This document shows positions 40,976 to 50,870 of a DNA stretch of 64,000 nucleotides, one piece after another. The notes beneath the pieces are model-generated. The model was not told where the DNA came from. It saw nothing but the letters and a program-made list of their open reading frames with translations, and searched no databases. The position numbers and the translations under genes are program-made. This DNA comes from Piromyces finnis finn (lineage: Eukaryota; Fungi; Neocallimastigomycota): positions 620,001 through 684,000 of the forward strand of contig MCFH01000020.1 in the NCBI GenBank assembly GCA_002104945.1, written 5' to 3'. Each line of letters opens with the position of its first letter. Positions within the stretch are counted from its first letter, which is position 1.

Positions 40976-42225
40976 ATTTTCTTTCTTTATAAAAAAAATT
41001 ATGATAAAAAATAATTATTAAATTCCTTTTTCTTTTATTTAATATATATTAATGTATTGTTATCATAGTTTTACTTTTTTTTTTTTTATCTTTATATTAT
41101 TTAAAATTAATGGGTATAAAATATTTATTTCTGATGGATTTACTATACTTTTTTTTTTTAACAGATATTAATTCTTTTTGATATAATGTTAAAAGACAAA
41201 TAATAGAATTAAATTAAATGTTATTTATTTTATTATTGGGTATTATTATATATTAATTACAAATAAATAAAAGTTAATTAAAACAATAATTTAAAATATA
41301 TATATTTTATAAAGAAATATTAAAAATATTAAAATGTATTATTTTAAAAAAAAAAAAGTTTTTTTTTTTTTTTATTATTACCTTTTTATGTATTAAATCT
41401 TTAAAATTACACCAATAATTTATTATATTATTTAATAATTTTTTTATTAAAATATTTTTTAAAATTATGAAAAGTAAAAAAGAAAATGAAAAAAAAGTAA
41501 TATTTTTTGTAACTTTATAAAAAGGTTTATAATTTAAATTATGAAAAGTTTTTATTATTCTTTCTCTCTCTCTCTCTCTCTTTTTATTTTTTCTCATTTT
41601 TCTCATTATAATTTATTTTACATTAAAATTAGTCTTTTAAAACAACATTCACTCTGTAGATTTATCCTATTAAAAATTTTATATAAATCATAAAAGTTTA
41701 TTTATATATAAAATAAAAATTAAAAAATGATTTAAAATCTTTTTTTTTTTTTCCCGTACTTTTGATAAAATTTTTTAGGTCTATTTACCATAAAAAAAAT
41801 AATTTTATTTAGGTAAAAAAAAAAAAAAACTTTTTTGTTTTTTAGATTATTTTTTTTATTTTTTTTAAAAAAAAAAAAGGACATCTCTTTATTACAGAAA
41901 AAAAAAAAGTTTTGTAATTCTTATATTTTTACATTTATAAGGTATGTGTATATTATAAAATTTTAGAATTAAAAAAAAAAAAAATCTATCATCCAAATTA
42001 TTTAAAAGGATGAAACTATAAAAATATCTCGAATTCCTAAAATAATTATTAATTAAAAACAATTGTTTAATTGAATAAATAATTTAAATTATAATTTTTT
42101 TTTTTCAATAAAAAAAATATAAACATTAAAATTTATTGTATATTAAAATGGTATAATAATAATAACAATTAAAATGAAATGTAATTGATTTGTTGATAAA
42201 GAAAAAAAAAAAAAAATATAAAAAA

Positions 42226-44474
42226 ATGGTTGAAAAGGATGAGATAGTTATAAGCAAGGAGGAATCACTTGAAAATCCAACTTTACAAAACCCAAACAAA
42301 TCACCAAACAAATCACCAAGTAAATCTCCAAACAAATCACCAAGTAAATCACCAAGTAAATCACCAAGTAAATCTCCTGAAAAATCACCTGAAAAATCAC
42401 CTGAAAAATCACCTGAAAAATCACTGGAAAAATCACCAAGTAAATCACTTAAAGAACAATCAACTCCAAAAAAAGCATCTCCAAATAAATGTGAAAATAA
42501 AGAATCTAAAATTTCACCATTCAAAACACCAGAAAAATCTTCCCCAAAAAAATTTATAAAAAGCAATTCCCCAAAAGTGGATGACTCACCAATGCTTAAT
42601 ACTAGAAATCTTGTAAATAAATGGGAAGACATAAAAAAAGACAATGATAAATTAGCAAAAGCAACAAAATATGAAAATGTGAAATCCGAAAAAAGAAAAT
42701 CTACTTTTGGTTCAAGGGATTCATCTACAACATTCACACCAATTTCAAATTTCCTTAGTTCCGAAACAAATAAAAAGGGAATCACTTTAGATGAAACAAA
42801 ATTAAAGGATCATATACCAGAAATTACAAAAAAATTTTCAATGAAAGATAAAAGAATAAGAGAAAATATTAAAAGATTTAACCAATCTTACAATACTGCA
42901 AATATTGATTTAAGAGAAAATGAAAAAAAAATTGTTTCCGTAAAACCTACCAAAAAAGAAAAGCGTGTATATATAGAAGATGATGACGATGAAGATAAAG
43001 TTCAACGCTCAAAGAGAGTAAAAGTAAGTGAATTAGATAAAAATGGAAACACTTCTATTTGGCACAGAATTAATTCAGCAATATGTTCACTTAAGGAAAC
43101 TCTAAAATCAAAAACTGAAGAAAAAACTGTTGAAAACACTACAGGAAAAGAAAATGAAAGCTTTGTTATTACACCAACAGTTAAAAATCAGGAAATTAAA
43201 AAACTCGACCGTCTTAATGAAGGAACATGTTTGAATATATTTAATCCTTCCGTAAATAAATCTACAATACCAATATACCTAAGATTACGTAGAAGCAGTT
43301 CAAATATTAAAGAGGATAATTCAATAACAAATAATTTTGCAAAGTCTAATACCAAACCAGAATGGGTCAATAAATTATATATGGTTATTAGCAATGAAAC
43401 CTCTGCTCCAAAATTGTTTGATGTAAGTAATTATATTATATTATATTTGTAAATGACACTCGCAAAATTCACATTAACAAATAAATAATCAATGTAATTA
43501 TCATTCAATTTTACTAATATATATTTTATTATATAAATTAATATTTCTATTATAAATATTATAAATATTAATAAATAATGAATAATTAATAAAAAAGGTA
43601 CCAGTTCATTGGACTTCCCTTTCATCTGAAATGGTATATATTTTAAATGTTTCAGGTGAAGCATTAATTCAATTTAATGGATCAGATAGTCTTAACAGAG
43701 ATAAAGACTACGCTAAAAGAATTTGTAAAAGAATCAGTTTAAATGATAATGTTCCAGATATCTTTGAAATTGAGCAAGAAGAATCATATGAAGATAATAC
43801 TGTTGTATTACAACTTTTCTGGAAAGCATTAGAATTAGAAAATTATAAAAAGGAAGAAAGAAAAAAAATTATTTTAAAAAATGACGAACAAAACTTAAAA
43901 ACTGTTTTAAAAGAAAATAAAAATGAAATAGATATTGAAAAGGCAATTTATATCTACAGGTAATAATTATTTATATAAGAAATTTTAAAGTCATCCAAAT
44001 ATTTTATTTTAATTATTGGAATCTACATTATATAAATTATATTTTTTATAACGTCATCATTATATGGTTTGATTATTAATGGATTTATTATATAAAATAG
44101 AATTAATGAGCAAACCAACTCATTAGATTTAATACACAATGGTACTTTCCCAACTTACAGATGCTTAAATTCAAATACATCAATGATTTTTGATTTTGCT
44201 GGTGAAGTTTATTTATGGCAAGGAAAGAACTCCAGCTTAAATGCTAGAAGTATCGGAATTAAATTTGCACAGGTAATAAAAATAATTAATAAATAGTAAT
44301 AATTATTATTTTAAATTTTAATAAATGAAATTGTTTTATTGTTATAATTAATGAAATTAGAAAATTTTCAGTGATTATAAAAGACCATCCTGGGCAAGTT
44401 TAAGAAAAATTAATGAAGGACATGAACAAATTCTTTTCCAAGAAAAATTTAAAGATAGTTTTTACTTCTTTTAA
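42226..44474 (+). CDS. Supervillin/gelsolin-like protein with KSP-repeat N-terminus and only two gelsolin-like repeats; 3' end uncertain
   Basis: Exons 42226-43422, 43598-43959, 44101-44272 and 44361-44474 join in frame. MIFDFAGEVYLWQGK and RPSWASLRKINEGHEQILFQEKFKD resemble supervillin repeat G2 ([37 protein letters not shown]). Confidence 0.72.
42290..42450 (+). repeat. 12-bp tandem repeat encoding (KSPx)n
   Basis: aaatcacc[aagt/tgaa/aaac] units; the protein reads KSPNKSPSKSPNKSPSKSPSKSPSKSPEKSPEKSPEKSPEKSLEKSPSK. Confidence 0.92.
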
Positions 44475-45007: not shown

Positions 45008-45048
<41 letters not shown>

Positions 45049-45049
45049 A

Positions 45050-45103
45050 TTATTTAGGTTTATTACAGTCATCAAGTATAATAGCATCTTTTTCAAACCT
45101 ATC

Positions 45104-45148
<45 letters not shown>

Positions 45149-48100
45149 TGTTAAAATATATCTATATTATTATGAATGTTGTATATAATAAATAATACAA
45201 TATTTACTTTTTAAAGTAATTTTCTGACAAAAGACCCTTAATTGAATTATGACTTAAATTTCTTTAATAATTAAAAAGATAATTAATATTTATATATAAT
45301 TTTGTATAAATTTTTCATATTAATTATCACAAATTAATAATAATTAAATGTATGGTAATAATTACAATATTTCAAGGTTTATTAAGTTTTCGATTTTATC
45401 AGAAATTGAACCGGTTAATTTATTGTTATTTAAACATCTAATAAAAGAAACATAATTTCATTATTTTATTAGAATGCTTCTTATTTCAGCTATTATATAT
45501 AAATAAATACGGAAACTTACAATTTCTTAAGCTTTATTAATTTATAGATAGTTTCAGGAATATCACCTTCAAAGGAATTAAAACTTAAATCACTATGTAA
45601 TTATTGATATTTTTTAGTATTTCTATTATTAATATCTAATGATAATTACTAAAAAATATTTAAATAAATATTTACAGAATTTCAAGATTTATTAATTTTC
45701 CTATCGAGGATGGTATACTTCCAGATAATTCATCTGATGATAAGTTTCTATATTTTGAGATTAAAATATTAAAATATAGTTAGTATAAAAAATAATAATA
45801 AATTAGGTATATAGTATAAATTTATTATTATCACATACAACACTGTTAAGGATTCAAAATGACCAATAGTTGATGGTAATATACCATTAAATGAATTATT
45901 ATTAATAATACTGTATAGTTAAAAATATTAAAGAATTAGGGTTTTTTTGTATAATACATAAAAACAATTATTGATTCTTATATATATAATATTTACATTT
46001 CTGTACTTTGATTCATTGTTTGAAGCAACCTATTTACATAAATTAGATTTAAACAATTTATACAGAAAAAGATTAATTTATATATATTAATTATATAATA
46101 TTGTGAAATTGAAATACTATAAAAAAAATACTTACAAATAAATTAATGCAAAATCTCTAAAGTTTTTATTAAAATATTCTGGTGAAGAAAACATTTTTGA
46201 TATACTATGAGATAAGGAATAATGCTCTACACAAATTAAGCGATAAAGTTCATCAAAAGAATATACCATATCATCTGGATTACACTTTGTTAAATCAGAG
46301 GAAGCGTTTGAATCAATTGGAGACTTTAAATCTAAATCATTTACCTTATTTGTAATTTTTTCTTTCAATTTTTCTCTTAACTCTTGGTATAAATATCTAA
46401 GATTTCTTCTTGATGTAAAGGTATCTTTAAATAATTTTTCATTAAATTTACCTGATTCTTTATCAACAAATTTTGTTTTTATTTCTTTAACTAATTCAGA
46501 TGAGTTCTTTTTTGACCACATTGCACTAATGTTATTATCACTTTGTTCTTTATTTCTATAATTTATTGATGTAGTATATTTTTTATGAGTTAAATCTTCT
46601 GATGATTTTCCATTATCATTATTTTTTGGTCTCTCATATGCAGTAGCATGAAGAATGTTGGATTCATCGATTTCAAACATTACATTTACACAAATTTTAC
46701 CTGCTAATTCTAAAGTAATGTTTGGAACTACTAAACTACCAATCATTTTATTAAACAATACACAAAAACTATCTCCTTCAAAAATATTGAAGGAAAGTTG
46801 GTTTTGATAGTCTACAGAAGTATAAAATGCACGTTCAAATGGTTTAGTAGTTGGGATCCTTGTACCACTTGGAATAATACATGAAAAAGATAATCCACCT
46901 GATTCTACACCAAGATTCATACTTACAACATCTTCAATTATATTTTTTGTCATATTTGTTTTTTTAACAGGTGTTTTATCGATATTTACACTTTCTTCTT
47001 GATCCTGATTATTAGCTTCCCTATCAAGTTGATCTTCTTCTTCAGGAGAGAATTTACTTAAACCTAAACTGTTGGCATAAATAGAAGCACCTCTTGCAAC
47101 AACTTCTGTATCACTCGAATGATCTAATGGTACTTTTCCATCAAAATAATTTTTTACTAAATCAATGATACTTGGAATATTTGAGGAGCCACCTACCATA
47201 ATTACACAATCGATATTTTTTTTTTCAACTTTATCCTTCAATTTTTCAAAGAAATTATCTAAGCAAACAATAATACGATCATATATATCTTTACATATTT
47301 CTATAAATTTTTCTCCCGTTAATTCGATAAAATATTCATCTTCGTCATCTTCATCTTCATCCTCCTTTTCCTCAAATCCACCTAAATCTGAAATATCAAC
47401 TTCAACAGACATACGCTTTCCTCCAGAAAGTCGTATTTTAGCTTCTTCACATTTATTATAGAGTTGATGTCTTAATTTTGGTTTCTTCTCAGCTAATAAA
47501 CCTAAATCAACATTAAATTGTTCCTTTGTTTGTTTAATAACATAATTAATAATTGTAGAAGTAATATCTTCTCCTCCTAAAAATGTATCACCACCATATC
47601 CAATAATTTTTACTGGTTCATCATTTGAAAATTTTGCTACTGTAAGATCAGTGGTACCACCACCAATATCACAAACTAAATAGGTTTTTGAATTGTTATC
47701 TACAGGGGATTGTGGATTAATACCTCGATCAATTCTTTTTTTATAAGCATAATAAATAATAGCAGCAGATGGTTCATTCAATAAAGCTAATACATGTAAT
47801 TTTGCCTCTTCCGCTGCTTTCTTTGTCTCAGCTCTTTGTTCCTGAGTGAAATAAGCAGGTACTGTTATAACGCAGTATACTTCGGGGTTTTCATTATCTA
47901 ATGCTCCACAATGTACAATATCTTCACGAATGGATTTTAATATGTCTACACTAACATCACTTGGTTTTTTAAAGCCAATTTCACTACCATCCGATTTATT
48001 GACAATTCTATAAACTGGAAAATTATCTTTATTTATTATTTCTACTGTTGAATTTTCAGCGACTTTTTTTACTATCTTATCATCATAAGATGTACCAATT

Positions 48101-48330
48101 AATCTCTTTGAATTAAATATAGTCTGTTTAGTATATTTATAGGCTTGAATTTTCGCTTCATAACCAACTAATGCACTACCATCTTTGTCATATCTTACTA
48201 CAGATGGTTTGTTTTCTTTTGCCATACCTTTTGTTTTTACTAATTGAACAATATCATTTTCATAAATTGAGGAACTCGAAAAACATGTTCCCAAATCTAT
48301 ACCCGCATATATTATTTTTTCATTACTCAT
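45050..48330 (-). CDS. Atypical Hsp70 (NBD + SBD-beta) fused to C-terminal leucine-rich repeats; 8 exons, about 872 aa
   Basis: Exon 1 (48330-46136) has GIDLGT, SKRLIG, ITVPAYF, NEPSAA, DIGGGTTD, GDTFLGGED, VGGSSNIP and an SBD-beta. A GTAAGT donor at 46135 is followed by exons 46029-45997, 45910-45839, 45747-45676, 45592-45521, 45437-45366, 45261-45208 and 45098-45050. All are GT-AG and phase 2, and the frame stays open to TAA at 45052-45050. Confidence 0.85.
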
Positions 48331-48987
48331 TTGTAATAATGTTTATAATATAAATTTTTTTTACTATATATAACTTTTGTTCTAAAGATTTTTATTTATA
48401 TTTTTATTGATATATATCAAAAAATTAAATAAAAATATACAGTATTTTATTCTTTTTATATTTTTATTATAAAATCTATTATATAATATATAATATTTTG
48501 AAAATTTTGACTTAAAGTATCACCTTAACCTTATAAATATTATGAATATAAAAATAATATAAAAATAAAATAAATAAAAATTAAAAAATGAATGAGATAA
48601 AAATTTACGAATAAAACAACATATATATATATTATTTAATTTATACATCAAATAAAAATTTTAAATAATATAAAATAAAATAATGAGCTTTTTAATAGTT
48701 AATAATCAAAGTTTTTATTTAGGTAACTTTAATTTTAAAAAAAAAATCAAAACTTCAATCATTACATTTTATATTTTTGTGATATATATATATACTATAT
48801 AATAACAAGTATTTTTATATAAATATTTTTGACACATTATTAGTTTCATTTCTATAATTTAAAAAAAAAAAGAAGTATTTTTAACTATATTCATCTATGT
48901 ACAATTGGTATAATTCATATTTTTTTATTCATATATAAAAATATACCCATTTCATAAAGTTTTCATTAAAGTTTAATATTTATATCA
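48331..48987. promoter_or_regulatory. Putative bidirectional promoter between the two Hsp70-fold genes
   Basis: 657-bp AT-rich spacer between two divergent start codons. No specific motif was identified; the function is inferred from the geometry. Confidence 0.45.
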
Positions 48988-50870
48988 ATGGATCCATTAT
49001 ATGAAAAAATAAAAAAATCAATTACTTTTGTAGCAATTGATATTGGTTCTTATTCAACAAAATCATTATCAAGTCATTCACCCCTTAATAAAACTTTTGA
49101 AAATCAAATCGATTCCGCAACAAGATATCAATTATATGATATTCCTTCCAACAATATTTATGTTAAAAATTATAATAAAGATGAAGAGCAAACCAATAAA
49201 ACCGACAGTAATACCGTAATTAGTAAAAGAGATGAAATTATTAAATATGATTATTTAAATATACGTCCTAAATGCTTAATTGATAAAATAAAACTCTACA
49301 ATGTTAATTATAGTAATACACCACAGTACTATGATAAAATAGAAAATGATGAAATTTGTACAAATGGTATTTGTATTGACAATAATTCAGGATTCATAGG
49401 ATATAAAATAAAACCACCAAATCAGAAAAATACTTATTTTATTTCATATAACTATCATTTACAAAGATATATTGACCTTTACATGAATGAATTGCTAGAA
49501 AAAATGAATCCTCAAAACCAAAATAAAAAAATAATTTTAATATTTACCATCCCCCTATTTGAAAATGATGCTAATAAAGCAACAAAAGATGAATCATATA
49601 AATATTTTCATAATCTTAATAAAAAAAGATATATTGATAGTATTAATAAAGGTATATCTAAATATAAAAATGTTATTGCAGGTGTAGTATATGTTACTGA
49701 AATAGAAAGTTTAATACAACATTGGAAAAATAATTTTGAATATCAAATGCTATCTTTACAAAATTATTGTTCAAAGCCTGAACAAAAATCTATTCCAGAT
49801 TATCAGAAAAAAGTATTATTTTTAGATTTTGGATGTTATCATAGTAAATTCTATCTTACACAACTCTCATCAAATACTCTTCATAGAGGTACCAATAAAG
49901 AAAATAAAATTGATGATAATATCATTTTGGAATGGGACATTTTAAATATTTCTGGTGAACAAATTAATAATGATATTATTCAATTATTACTAAAGAAGTA
50001 TCCAGATATTAAAAAAAGTTATAGTAAAGCCTTGGGCAAATATAAGATTTGGAGAACAGTAGATCAGGAAATTAAACGTGCTTTCACTAATCCAAATGTA
50101 AAAGACTTTTCATGTGAAATTTTAAATGCTGGTGATTATTATGATTTAATGATTAATCGAGCCGAAATTAATGATATATTAAATCCATATTACCAACTAT
50201 TAATAAATAAAATAGAAGAACTTTTAATAAAATATAGTATAGAACAAAAGTAAGAAAAAACATAGAATAATTTATTATGAATTAACCTATTTATTTATTG
50301 TTAAATATTAACAAAATAATTCTACATTTAATATTATTTAATGTAATATTATAACATTCTTTTAATATATACAATATATTATATTATAGTGAATTGGAAG
50401 TATGCATTTGTGGTGATGGTGCTTTAATATTTGAAAATTATATAATGAATACTTTAAATTCAAACCCAATAATAAAAAATAATATTCATTCAGTAACATG
50501 GAATAAAGTTAATACTCTTCATGGTAGTTTATTAAAATTACATGAAAATATTAATAAATTTGTTACAACAATTAGAAAAAGAAGAATTAGTACTCTCTCA
50601 GAAAAACGAAGTATATCTAAAATTTTATATAATCAACATTCTTTTGATGCTATTATTAGTATGGAAAGTAACTTAAAGCAAATTCTTCATCCTTCTCAAA
50701 AAATAGAATTTGGTTTTAACTCAAATTATAATACTTCCCAAAACAAACTTACTGATAAGGGAAAATTAAAAGCAGTATCGGATAGTTCTATATCGGAATA
50801 TACTACTGATGATATTATTAATTTTAAAGATATAAATGATGTTATTAATTATTTGAATACAACTATATGA
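48988..50870 (+). CDS. Highly degenerate Hsp70/actin-fold protein (probable pseudo-ATPase); 2 exons, about 580 aa
   Basis: Exons 48988-50249 and 50390-50870 join in frame (GTAAG...TAG). Hsp70 motifs appear in the correct order: VAIDIGSYS, LIFTIP, VTEIESLI, VLFLDFG, NISGEQIN, EIKRAFT...INRAEINDI, VCICGDG. Confidence 0.75.

Follow-up and report, generated by a model that had tools for sequence, protein, structure and literature searches.

Two unusual genes of the Hsp70 family, here called gene A and gene B, lie head-to-head on opposite strands of the Piromyces finnis genome, within the 64,000-nucleotide stretch of DNA that was analysed (the window). The start codon of gene A is at position 48330 (minus strand) and that of gene B at 48988 (plus strand), with a gap of exactly 657 bp between them (Table 1). 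The sequence-only reading of this locus had described two Hsp70-related genes in precisely this arrangement, and since both are conserved across genera with dN/dS values of 0.05-0.2, we regard them as real genes and not as chance reading frames.

Table 1. Features of the gene A-gene B locus in P. finnis (positions in the window).
Feature	Position	Strand	Basis
Gene A, full span: Hsp70-LRR, 8 exons, 872 aa	45050..48330	-	exon 1 ORF; Pfam HSP70; GT/AG borders; translation agrees with 896-aa orthologues
Gene A ATPase domain (NBD), about aa 1-425	47056..48330	-	Pfam stretch 9-420; invariant columns common to 46 Hsp70s
Gene A acidic interdomain linker, expanded, fast-evolving, about aa 426-470	46921..47055	-	identity, dN/dS, pLDDT
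Gene A beta substrate-binding domain, about aa 471-575	46606..46920	-	second Pfam HSP70 stretch; AF2 beta sandwich
Gene A helical region, family-specific, about aa 576-732	46136..46605	-	AF2 helices 611-660
Gene A exon 2, 33-nt mini-exon (LLQTMNQSTE-)	45997..46029	-	contiguous with flanking exons in spliced transcript contig L014
Gene A exon 3, LRR1, 72 nt, phase-2 introns	45839..45910	-	
Gene A exon 4, LRR2	45676..45747	-	
Gene A exon 5, LRR3	45521..45592	-	
Gene A exon 6, LRR4	45366..45437	-	
Gene A exon 7, last, partial LRR (NLSHNSIKGLLSENYFK)	45208..45261	-	
Gene A exon 8, tail FEKDAIILDDCNKPK and stop	45050..45098	-	
AT-rich divergent intergenic region, 657 bp, putative shared promoter	48331..48987	.	
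Gene B exon 1, aa 1-420	48988..50249	+	ORF, orthologue alignment, hhalign, HMM
Gene B exon 2, aa 421-580	50390..50870	+	junction confirmed in a relative, whose transcript contigs L006 and L007 lack the intron

Gene A combines an intact ATPase domain with a beta substrate-binding domain. Its first exon encodes 732 aa and matches Pfam HSP70 with an E value of 4e-81; our model is a 100% match to the public P. finnis protein (P0001) across the 791 aa present in the public model, and its stop codon ends at 45050, where the sequence-only reading had set the start of the locus. That reading had gene A keeping its ATPase motifs and carrying leucine-rich repeats (LRRs), and both points were confirmed: the LRR exons lie in the window, and all catalytic columns that are invariant in an alignment of 46 Hsp70s are kept, including the phosphate-1 motif GIDLGT, the lysine in FNSKRLIG, NEPSAA, the phosphate-2 motif CDIGGGTTD and the adenosine motif MVGGSS. 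The ATPase domain, which carries an acidic insert (EEKEDEDEDDEDE), is predicted at a pLDDT of 84-96 in the AF2 model of an orthologue and has a dN/dS of 0.05-0.08. The linker that follows ends in NIIEDVV, the counterpart of canonical LLLLDV; it shows 28-56% identity between genera, a dN/dS of 0.3-0.8 and a pLDDT below 50 in the orthologue model, where the beta substrate-binding domain, 94% identical between genera, reaches 81-91. In the helical region the helices at 611-660 have a pLDDT of 60-74 and the remainder is low. No homologues of this region were found outside the Hsp70-LRR family; its language-model neighbours are Hsp70 C-terminal fragments (score 0.73, to be taken as a lead only), and it is possibly a remodelled lid.

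Downstream of exon 1 we identified seven small exons with GT/AG borders, corresponding to the mini-exon, five 24-aa plant-type LRRs and the tail. Other genera have six repeats: the intron at 45262..45365 is the site at which all other lineages hold a 69-nt LRR5 exon that is missing in P. finnis. Pfam LRR_1, LRR_8 and LRR_4 are present in the 896-aa orthologues, and the LRR part of the orthologue model has a pLDDT below 50. The 24-residue repeats (LxxLxLxxNxLxGxIPxxLxxL) are 35-45% identical to those of plant-type LRR proteins, that is, receptor kinases and receptor-like proteins as well as bacterial and chytrid proteins. Unlike these, gene A encodes neither a signal peptide nor a transmembrane segment or kinase, and its repeats are just five or six in number, each on its own 72-nt exon, and joined to an Hsp70. 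A literature search found no paper on an Hsp70-LRR fusion.

When gene A is set against canonical cytosolic Hsp70 (Ssa/Hsc70, PF00012), both have a complete ATPase domain in which no catalytic residue is missing, a linker with a hydrophobic-DV motif at its end and a beta substrate-binding domain, whereas identity to any other Hsp70 is only about 30%, subdomain IIB and the linker carry acidic inserts, and the C-terminus is of another kind: the family-specific helical region and the five to six LRRs stand in for the usual lid end and the EEVD co-chaperone docking tail. The protein ends in ...DDCNKPK, with neither EEVD nor HDEL, and no N-terminal extension precedes the first strand of the ATPase domain. 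Orthologues of gene A, as of gene B, were found in Neocallimastigomycota only. The earlier proposal that these are not housekeeping Hsp70s was supported; we would add that they are lineage-specific. Within the phylum, gene A orthologues are 83-92% identical across genera, with a dN/dS of 0.05-0.12, while their next-best database matches stand at about 30%. By comparison, a neighbouring gene is just 48-73% identical across the same genomes.

Gene B consists of two exons encoding 580 aa, and its spliced translation is identical to database protein P0121. Exon 1 holds a phosphate-1-like motif (FVAIDIGSYSTK), TIPLFENDANKATKDES where the canonical sequence is TVPAYFNDSQRQATKDAG, a phosphate-2-like motif (VLFLDFGCYHSK), ISGEQIN in place of canonical LGGEDFD, and subdomain IIB-like helices. 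In exon 2 an adenosine-loop-like VCICGDGALIF is followed by a tail of about 140 aa with the invariant motifs RRRISTLSEKRS and SDSSISEY; there is no substrate-binding domain. In the phosphate-2 loop DFGCY(H/Y/S/Q)S stands against canonical DLGGGT, and in the adenosine loop GDGA/S against GGST, so the altered loops of the proposed pseudo-Hsp70 were borne out, but the Hsp70 fold itself is just weakly detectable. Pfam gave no match to gene B even at an E value of 10, a sequence comparison with solved structures gave none, and hhalign against 93 Hsp70s returned a P value of 0.008 with collinear motifs and a probability of just 5%. An Hsp70 HMM nevertheless scores gene B higher than all 1936 shuffles, and its language-model neighbours are all non-canonical Hsp70-like proteins (score 0.93), the nearest being HSPA12-type and bacterial proteins, including SrfB and DUF5716-associated ones; HMMER and Pfam detected no homology between these and gene B, and they share 159 features with it, fewer than the 170 that are usual among true members of a family. 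The top 50 Foldseek matches, with E values of about 1e-8, are all Hsp70 ATPase domains, although the AF2 model of gene B is poor (pLDDT 41.7) and the Foldseek result therefore rests on a weak model. The site of the catalytic glutamate is ambiguous, since hhalign and predicted secondary structure differ. Taken together, these four weak but concordant lines suggest that gene B derives from an Hsp70 ATPase domain and that its phosphate-2 and adenosine loops have changed. Spliced gene B transcripts are seen in relatives and dN/dS is 0.12-0.21; being expressed and under purifying selection, the gene is not decaying.

The head-to-head order is also found in Piromyces sp. E2, in Anaeromyces robustus and on Piromyces-like metagenome contigs, and gene B adjoins gene A wherever a long contig allowed its position to be determined (three named genomes and the metagenome contigs), which makes a functional tie possible. 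However, the flanking genes are syntenic as well and the whole neighbourhood is kept, so the conserved adjacency that the sequence-only reading had expected is there without being special to the pair. In Neocallimastix (three assemblies and one metagenome contig) gene A is kept, with 85% identity and a dN/dS of about 0.10, yet neither gene B nor a remnant of it occurs in the 5.5 kb upstream, which gives no support to an obligate pair. Homologues of gene B were sought by a word-indexed search and a whole-library HMMER search, and no protein named as Neocallimastix was among the matches in either; a copy could be present, unannotated, elsewhere in that genus. The sister lineage Pecoramyces/Orpinomyces has kept gene B.

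The two genes may share a divergent promoter. In relatives the gap measures 1.3-1.5 kb, and among those compared the intergenic region holds no collinear conserved block, only low-complexity matches. Taking presence in assembled RNA contigs as evidence of expression, both genes seem to be transcribed in P. finnis. Each is present in two RNA assemblies, where the word shares are 0.73 and 0.66 over the whole stretch and 0.89 and 0.82 over gene B by itself, exons only being matched. Two other assemblies hold gene A and almost no gene B, and tight co-expression of the two was thus not supported.

We consider it fairly probable that genes A and B are separate, non-canonical members of the Hsp70 family, confined to Neocallimastigomycota and adjacent through inherited synteny. 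Gene A would be a cytosolic, ATP-hydrolysing Hsp70 whose clamp acts as in an ordinary Hsp70, and its LRR solenoid, a built-in adaptor, would tether it to a single conserved endogenous partner or site, making it a dedicated chaperone and not a variable sensor. Gene B would be an ATPase-domain-only derivative in which the gamma-phosphate hairpin has been remodelled from GGG-T to G-C-Y-x and the adenosine loop from GG to GD, and which presumably binds or hydrolyses ATP poorly. Its role may be to scaffold or regulate an Hsp70, possibly gene A, through ATPase-domain contact. Because Neocallimastix keeps a constrained gene A with no adjoining gene B, a partnership of the two is optional at best.

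Models for such a contact exist. Ssz1, part of the ribosome-associated complex, is an atypical Hsp70 that does not hydrolyse ATP, and Hsp110/Grp170 proteins are Hsp70-like nucleotide-exchange factors; by analogy, their mode of action could apply to genes A and B. Gene B resembles an Hsp70 ATPase domain in which the nucleotide loops have changed, and the ATPase domains of both Ssz1 and Hsp110 are among its Foldseek matches. Unlike Ssz1 and Hsp110/Grp170, it has no substrate-binding domain or Pfam HSP70 signal, it is restricted to one phylum and missing beside gene A in Neocallimastix, and no J-protein gene lies near the locus among the neighbourhoods compared. A stronger form of this idea, which we hold only tentatively, is a dedicated pair following Hsp70/Hsp110 or Ssb-Ssz1 logic: a heterodimer joined through the ATPase domains and co-expressed from the 657-bp region, with gene B as non-hydrolysing regulator or exchange factor and the LRRs targeting the complex. 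The recurrent head-to-head order, the constraint on two phylum-restricted genes and their joint presence in two RNA assemblies would all fit, but the equal constraint on gene A in Neocallimastix, the equally syntenic flanks and the RNA assemblies nearly devoid of gene B do not, and profile comparison found no similarity tying gene B to the gene A family specifically.

Gene B could also be the relic of an old inverted duplication, a head-to-head Hsp70 copy that lost its substrate-binding domain and whose function is now unrelated to gene A, or does not involve it, adjacency being a matter of history. Two adjacent Hsp70-derived genes and the clean loss of one of them in a genus would be expected under such a scenario; we find it rather unlikely, given that gene B is expressed and constrained. 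In addition, its profile matches canonical Hsp70s and not the gene A family, so paralogy with gene A cannot be shown. That gene B is an unrelated orphan with chance short-motif matches in an AT-rich, low-complexity proteome seems improbable: the empty Pfam result, the lack of a match among solved structures, the hhalign probability and the poor AF2 model would agree with it, but four independent weak signals converge on Hsp70, the motifs are collinear, correctly spaced and invariant among gene B orthologues, and in UniRef the protein carries a label for an actin-like ATPase domain.

The sequence-only reading had favoured an NLR-like module: the nucleotide switch of an Hsp70 would take the place of the STAND ATPase, the LRRs would detect ligands of non-self or stress origin, and the helper would be the pseudo-Hsp70. 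A divergent pair of which one member joins a nucleotide switch to LRRs does formally resemble the paired plant NLRs (RRS1/RPS4, RGA4/RGA5, Pik-1/Pik-2), and an anaerobic-fungal genome is reported to be rich in HSP70 genes (PMC10512342); the table text of the same paper does not list the Anaeromyces gene B orthologue among heat-shock-responsive genes. We regard this module as very improbable, since domain searches of both proteins found no STAND, death-fold, TIR or other effector domain and the pair has no integrated decoy or signalling domain, PADLOC gave no matches, each named genome has one orthologue of each gene among the search matches, and gene B is dispensable at the Neocallimastix locus. 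Between genera the LRR region keeps 82-85% identity, and its presumed ligand face shows no extra variability, 4/24 concave-face positions being variable against 15/72 scaffold positions. The per-domain dN/dS comparison that had been suggested as a check likewise spoke against a sensor, with strong purifying selection in both genes (0.05-0.2).

The first ORF of the Hsp70-LRR gene (gene A) matches the beginning of P0001, the public P. finnis protein of this gene at NCBI, with 100% identity, and its exon 1 matched the Pfam HSP70 family (PF00012) in two stretches (E 4e-81). When the gene A family was aligned with about 40-46 diverse Hsp70s, it was found to retain all Hsp70-invariant columns, including those that hold D12, K75, E186, D221, GGG-T226 and G380-G381; these columns are kept in the phosphate-1 (GIDLGT), catalytic Lys (KR-IG), TVPAYF, catalytic Glu (NEP), phosphate-2 (D-GGGT-D), GGED and adenosine-loop (GG) motifs. 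The predicted protein has an actin-like ATPase domain with the phosphate-1, phosphate-2 and adenosine motifs and the catalytic Asp, Lys, Glu, Asp and Thr of an Hsp70, and AF2, run on the 896-aa orthologue, modelled this domain at a pLDDT of 84-96. A beta substrate-binding domain is predicted both by the second Pfam stretch and by AF2 strands at residues 467-569 (pLDDT 81-91), and the linker position is occupied by NIIEDVV. Helices at 611-660, a candidate lid, were modelled with moderate confidence and the remainder, including the LRRs and the helical tail, with poor confidence, because the alignment is just a few sequences deep there; for the helical region we found no relatives outside the family, and a language-model look-up stayed below useful scores. 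Gene A ends in DDCNKPK, with an LRR tail instead of EEVD or HDEL, and it has no signal peptide or presequence, since its N-terminus extends merely seven residues ahead of the first ATPase-domain strand. The sequence-only reading, which had described a gene that keeps its ATPase motifs, carries LRRs and lacks EEVD, H/KDEL, signal peptide and presequence, thus agrees with the Pfam matches, the invariant columns and the LRR exons.

These LRRs lie in a set of seven small exons on the minus strand, 3′ of exon 1, which have GT/AG borders and join in phase 2 at every junction. The set opens with a mini-exon of 33 nt, continues with four 72-nt exons and a partial repeat of 54 nt, and closes with a tail of 49 nt. 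Each 72-nt exon encodes one plant-type LRR of 24 residues, so that the C-terminus consists of tandem LxxLxLxxNxLxGxIPxxLxxL units, the plant-specific type. The exons of the window are 83-92% identical to the LRR units of the orthologues (896 aa), among which P0002 matched the Pfam families LRR_1 (E 5e-14), LRR_8 (E 2e-10) and LRR_4 (E 1e-8), and all units are contiguous in the spliced transcript contig L014. The public model P0001 (791 aa) stops after LRR2 and misses the last four exons, for which we found good splice sites and orthologue support. A further 69-nt exon, LRR5, is present in Piromyces sp. E2, in the contigs L008/L010, in Anaeromyces, in Neocallimastix and in L014, and is missing from P. 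finnis alone, where an intron holds its slot. P. finnis has lost a single repeat cleanly and in frame, which the phase-2 structure of one LRR per exon made possible. For this species, splice junctions and expression are based here on homology, on word shares and on spliced contigs from relatives.

Coordinates of the features in the window
Feature	Position	Strand	Content
Ser/Pro/Lys-repeat-rich upstream neighbour (SPNKSPSK...)	42190-43963	+	models of 596-601 aa
Poly-T/poly-A tracts around the last exon and 3′ end of gene A	45010-45150		at least 30 nt
Whole stretch used for word shares	45040..50900		gene A and gene B
Gene A	48330..45050	-	8 exons, 872 aa; DDCNKPK-stop at 45050
Gene A, first ORF	48330..46132	-	732 aa
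Gene A, exons missed by P0001	45050-45675	-	LRR3, LRR4, partial repeat, tail
Gene A, intron from LRR4 to the last repeat	45262-45365	-	slot of the LRR5 exon
Start codons of gene A and gene B	48330 and 48988	-/+	gap of exactly 657 bp
Segment left out of the intergenic comparison	48460-48498
Gene B	48988..50249 and 50390..50870	+	2 exons, 580 aa
Gene B, RRRISTLSEKRS and SDSSISEY	~50575-50810	+	residues ~483-495 and ~551-558

Orthologues of gene A, 83-92% identical, were found in Piromyces, Anaeromyces, Neocallimastix, a Pecoramyces-like sample and metagenomes, and the matches listed included a single orthologue for each named genome. The next-best matches among 5.8 billion proteins were ordinary Hsp70s at about 30% identity, and, among the matches listed, PF00012 and LRR families occurred together in the gene A orthologues only; taken by itself, the LRR part is similar to generic LRR proteins of plants, bacteria and chytrids (35-45% identity). 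We found no description of an Hsp70-LRR fusion in the literature searched. Selection is strongly purifying: dN/dS was 0.05-0.12 in the ATPase, substrate-binding and helical parts of gene A and 0.12-0.21 in gene B, and fast evolution in gene A was limited to the acidic linker. The LRR region keeps 82-85% identity between genera, and its predicted ligand (concave) face is no more variable than the rest (4 of 24 positions against 15 of 72 elsewhere), while a flanking gene shows just 48-73% identity in the same genomes. Judged from these substitution patterns, such constraint is the apparent signature of a conserved housekeeping-type interaction and not of a diversifying receptor.

The two exons of the neighbouring degenerate Hsp70-like gene (gene B) translate to P0121 (BCR36DRAFT_404372), and the splice junction is confirmed by intron-less contigs of a relative. 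Gene B had no Pfam match up to E 10, its profile found no sequence match among solved structures, and a whole-library HMMER profile search of 1.84 billion representatives returned its own family only. Four lines, weak but concordant, suggest that it is an Hsp70 ATPase-domain derivative. Firstly, hhalign against 93 Hsp70s (P 0.008, probability 5%) aligned collinear motifs, pairing IDIGS with IDLGT, TIPLFENDANKATKD with TVPAYFNDSQRQATKD, KKVLFLDFG with KNILVFDLG and SGEQIN with GGEDFD. Secondly, an Hsp70 HMM scored 8.2 bits on P0121 over subdomain IIB, whereas the best of 1936 shuffles reached 5.5. Thirdly, its nearest language-model clusters, among the matches listed, were almost all non-canonical Hsp70-like proteins (top 0.93). 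Finally, an AF2 model built from four orthologues (pLDDT 41.7) had Hsp70, Ssz1 and Hsp110 ATPase domains as its 50 best Foldseek matches (E about 1e-8, TM 0.2-0.3), which, for a model of such low confidence, may be taken as support and not as proof. A profile comparison with the gene A family gave no specific similarity, so that an origin of gene B by local duplication is not demonstrable.

The altered nucleotide-binding loops first noticed from the sequence alone proved to be common to the four full-length orthologues: where DLGGGT would be canonical, the phosphate-2 hairpin reads DFGCY(H/Y/S/Q)S, and the adenosine loop has GDG(A/S) in place of GGS/T, so gene B has neither intact loop (DxGGGT and GGS/T). 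From these two loops we infer that ATP handling by gene B would be impaired. Past the adenosine loop there is a tail of about 140 residues, with no domain match, no predicted beta sandwich and language-model look-ups below useful scores, and gene B has no substrate-binding domain. The tail carries the invariant motifs RRRISTLSEKRS and SDSSISEY, which resemble sites for basophilic and acidophilic kinases and hint at control by phosphorylation.

The exact head-to-head spacing claimed for the two genes was confirmed by their start codons, in a region of 10-30% G+C. Conservation of the linkage, which the sequence-only reading had proposed as a check, held in part: the genes are also head-to-head in Anaeromyces robustus (gap 1.37 kb), Piromyces sp. 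E2 (1.47 kb) and at least three Piromyces-like metagenome contigs (1.29 kb), but gene B is absent beside gene A in Neocallimastix. The adjacency is conserved no more than background, since the neighbouring genes (a WAC/DDT gene, a 596-aa Ser/Pro/Lys-rich gene, an OTU gene and a NEDD4_Bsd2 gene) are likewise syntenic. The Ser/Pro/Lys-rich neighbour is syntenic across genera at 48-73% identity and has a faint gelsolin match in Neocallimastix. When we compared the intergenic DNA between genes A and B, we found low-complexity AT matches only and no conserved promoter block.

In Neocallimastix we examined three assemblies (L002-L004, 4430-10000) and a 16-kb metagenome contig (L019, 1-5482), in which the slot of gene B is occupied by 5.5 kb of gene-less AT-rich DNA upstream of gene A; tblastn found no gene B there and the gene B HMM scored no better than on control DNA. 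No protein named as Neocallimastix was among the gene B matches in either protein search. Beside this slot the OTU/NEDD4_Bsd2 pair has the opposite orientation to that in Anaeromyces, which points to loss of gene B at the breakpoint of a rearrangement. A sister lineage retains gene B, its protein P0126 being 99.7% identical to an Orpinomyces/Pecoramyces protein, and the gene A of that sample is nearer to Neocallimastix gene A than any other. Neocallimastix gene A shows no relaxation (dN/dS about 0.10), and the locus shows that gene A needs no gene B as a neighbour. In the Pecoramyces-like sample the contigs of the two genes do not overlap; a metagenome scan with gene B gave no match, and one with gene A yielded five contigs, short and mostly transcript-like, which are uninformative on linkage.

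Expression was read as word shares in four runs of the same organism labelled 'RNA?' (X1-X4). The whole stretch had shares of 0.73 in X1 and 0.66 in X2, and gene B alone 0.89 and 0.82; these shares equal the exon fraction and thus indicate transcripts of both genes that lack introns and spacer. For X3 and X4 the shares were 0.40 and 0.34 for the whole stretch and 0.11 and 0.00 for gene B, that is, gene A was assembled and gene B hardly. With regard to the proposed co-expression, these last two runs are only weak evidence against tight co-regulation, since contigs reveal presence and not absence. In the accessible part of the supplementary-table text of PMC10512342, whose tables presumably include heat-shock differential-expression lists, the Anaeromyces orthologue of gene B (JGI id 290112) was not found; the same paper reports that, of all fungi, the anaerobic ones have the largest share of HSP70 genes.

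The best explanation for gene A is a functional Hsp70 in which a conserved LRR adaptor takes the place of the tail on which co-chaperones dock, and that for gene B is an ATPase-domain-only Hsp70 relative that is probably non-hydrolysing. A regulatory contact between the two ATPase domains, which would be modelled on Hsp110 and Ssz1, is plausible by analogy. The two genes might then form a two-part chaperone private to gut fungi, an LRR-targeted Hsp70 with a catalytically dead ATPase-domain partner and a divergent promoter, serving a phylum-specific structure or client (which could be a zoospore, hydrogenosome or cellulosome component), with the partner replaced in Neocallimastix; we put this forward tentatively and consider it rather unlikely. 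That they form an NLR-like sensor/helper heterodimer, as had been proposed, is very improbable, and the 'Hsp70-NLR' reading should be downgraded: of four defining features tested, three speak against the analogy, as neither gene has a Pfam match to a STAND (NB-ARC or NACHT) ATPase, the LRRs are neither diversifying nor expanded, and the pairing is not obligate. PADLOC returned no matches.

Gene B also differs from known Hsp70 relatives. Hsp110 and Grp170 combine an ATPase domain with a beta substrate-binding domain and an extended lid, whereas gene B has, past its adenosine loop, only the tail of about 140 residues described above. Ssz1, the partner of the J-protein Zuo1, is a recognisable Hsp70 family member that is universal in fungi; gene B has no PF00012 match, and its named matches are restricted to Piromyces, Anaeromyces and Orpinomyces/Pecoramyces. 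Hsp70s normally reach their clients through separate J-proteins and through TPR co-chaperones docked on the EEVD tail. An Hsp70 with a built-in LRR adaptor, conserved phylum-wide at 83-92% identity, would exemplify hard-wired chaperone targeting, and the LRR partner, once found, would reveal what gene A is wired to. Gene B would represent an extreme Hsp70 ATPase domain that has drifted past profile detection yet is under selection, and may be useful for studies of pseudo-ATPase evolution. Public annotation describes both genes just as 'actin-like ATPase domain-containing' or 'hypothetical'.
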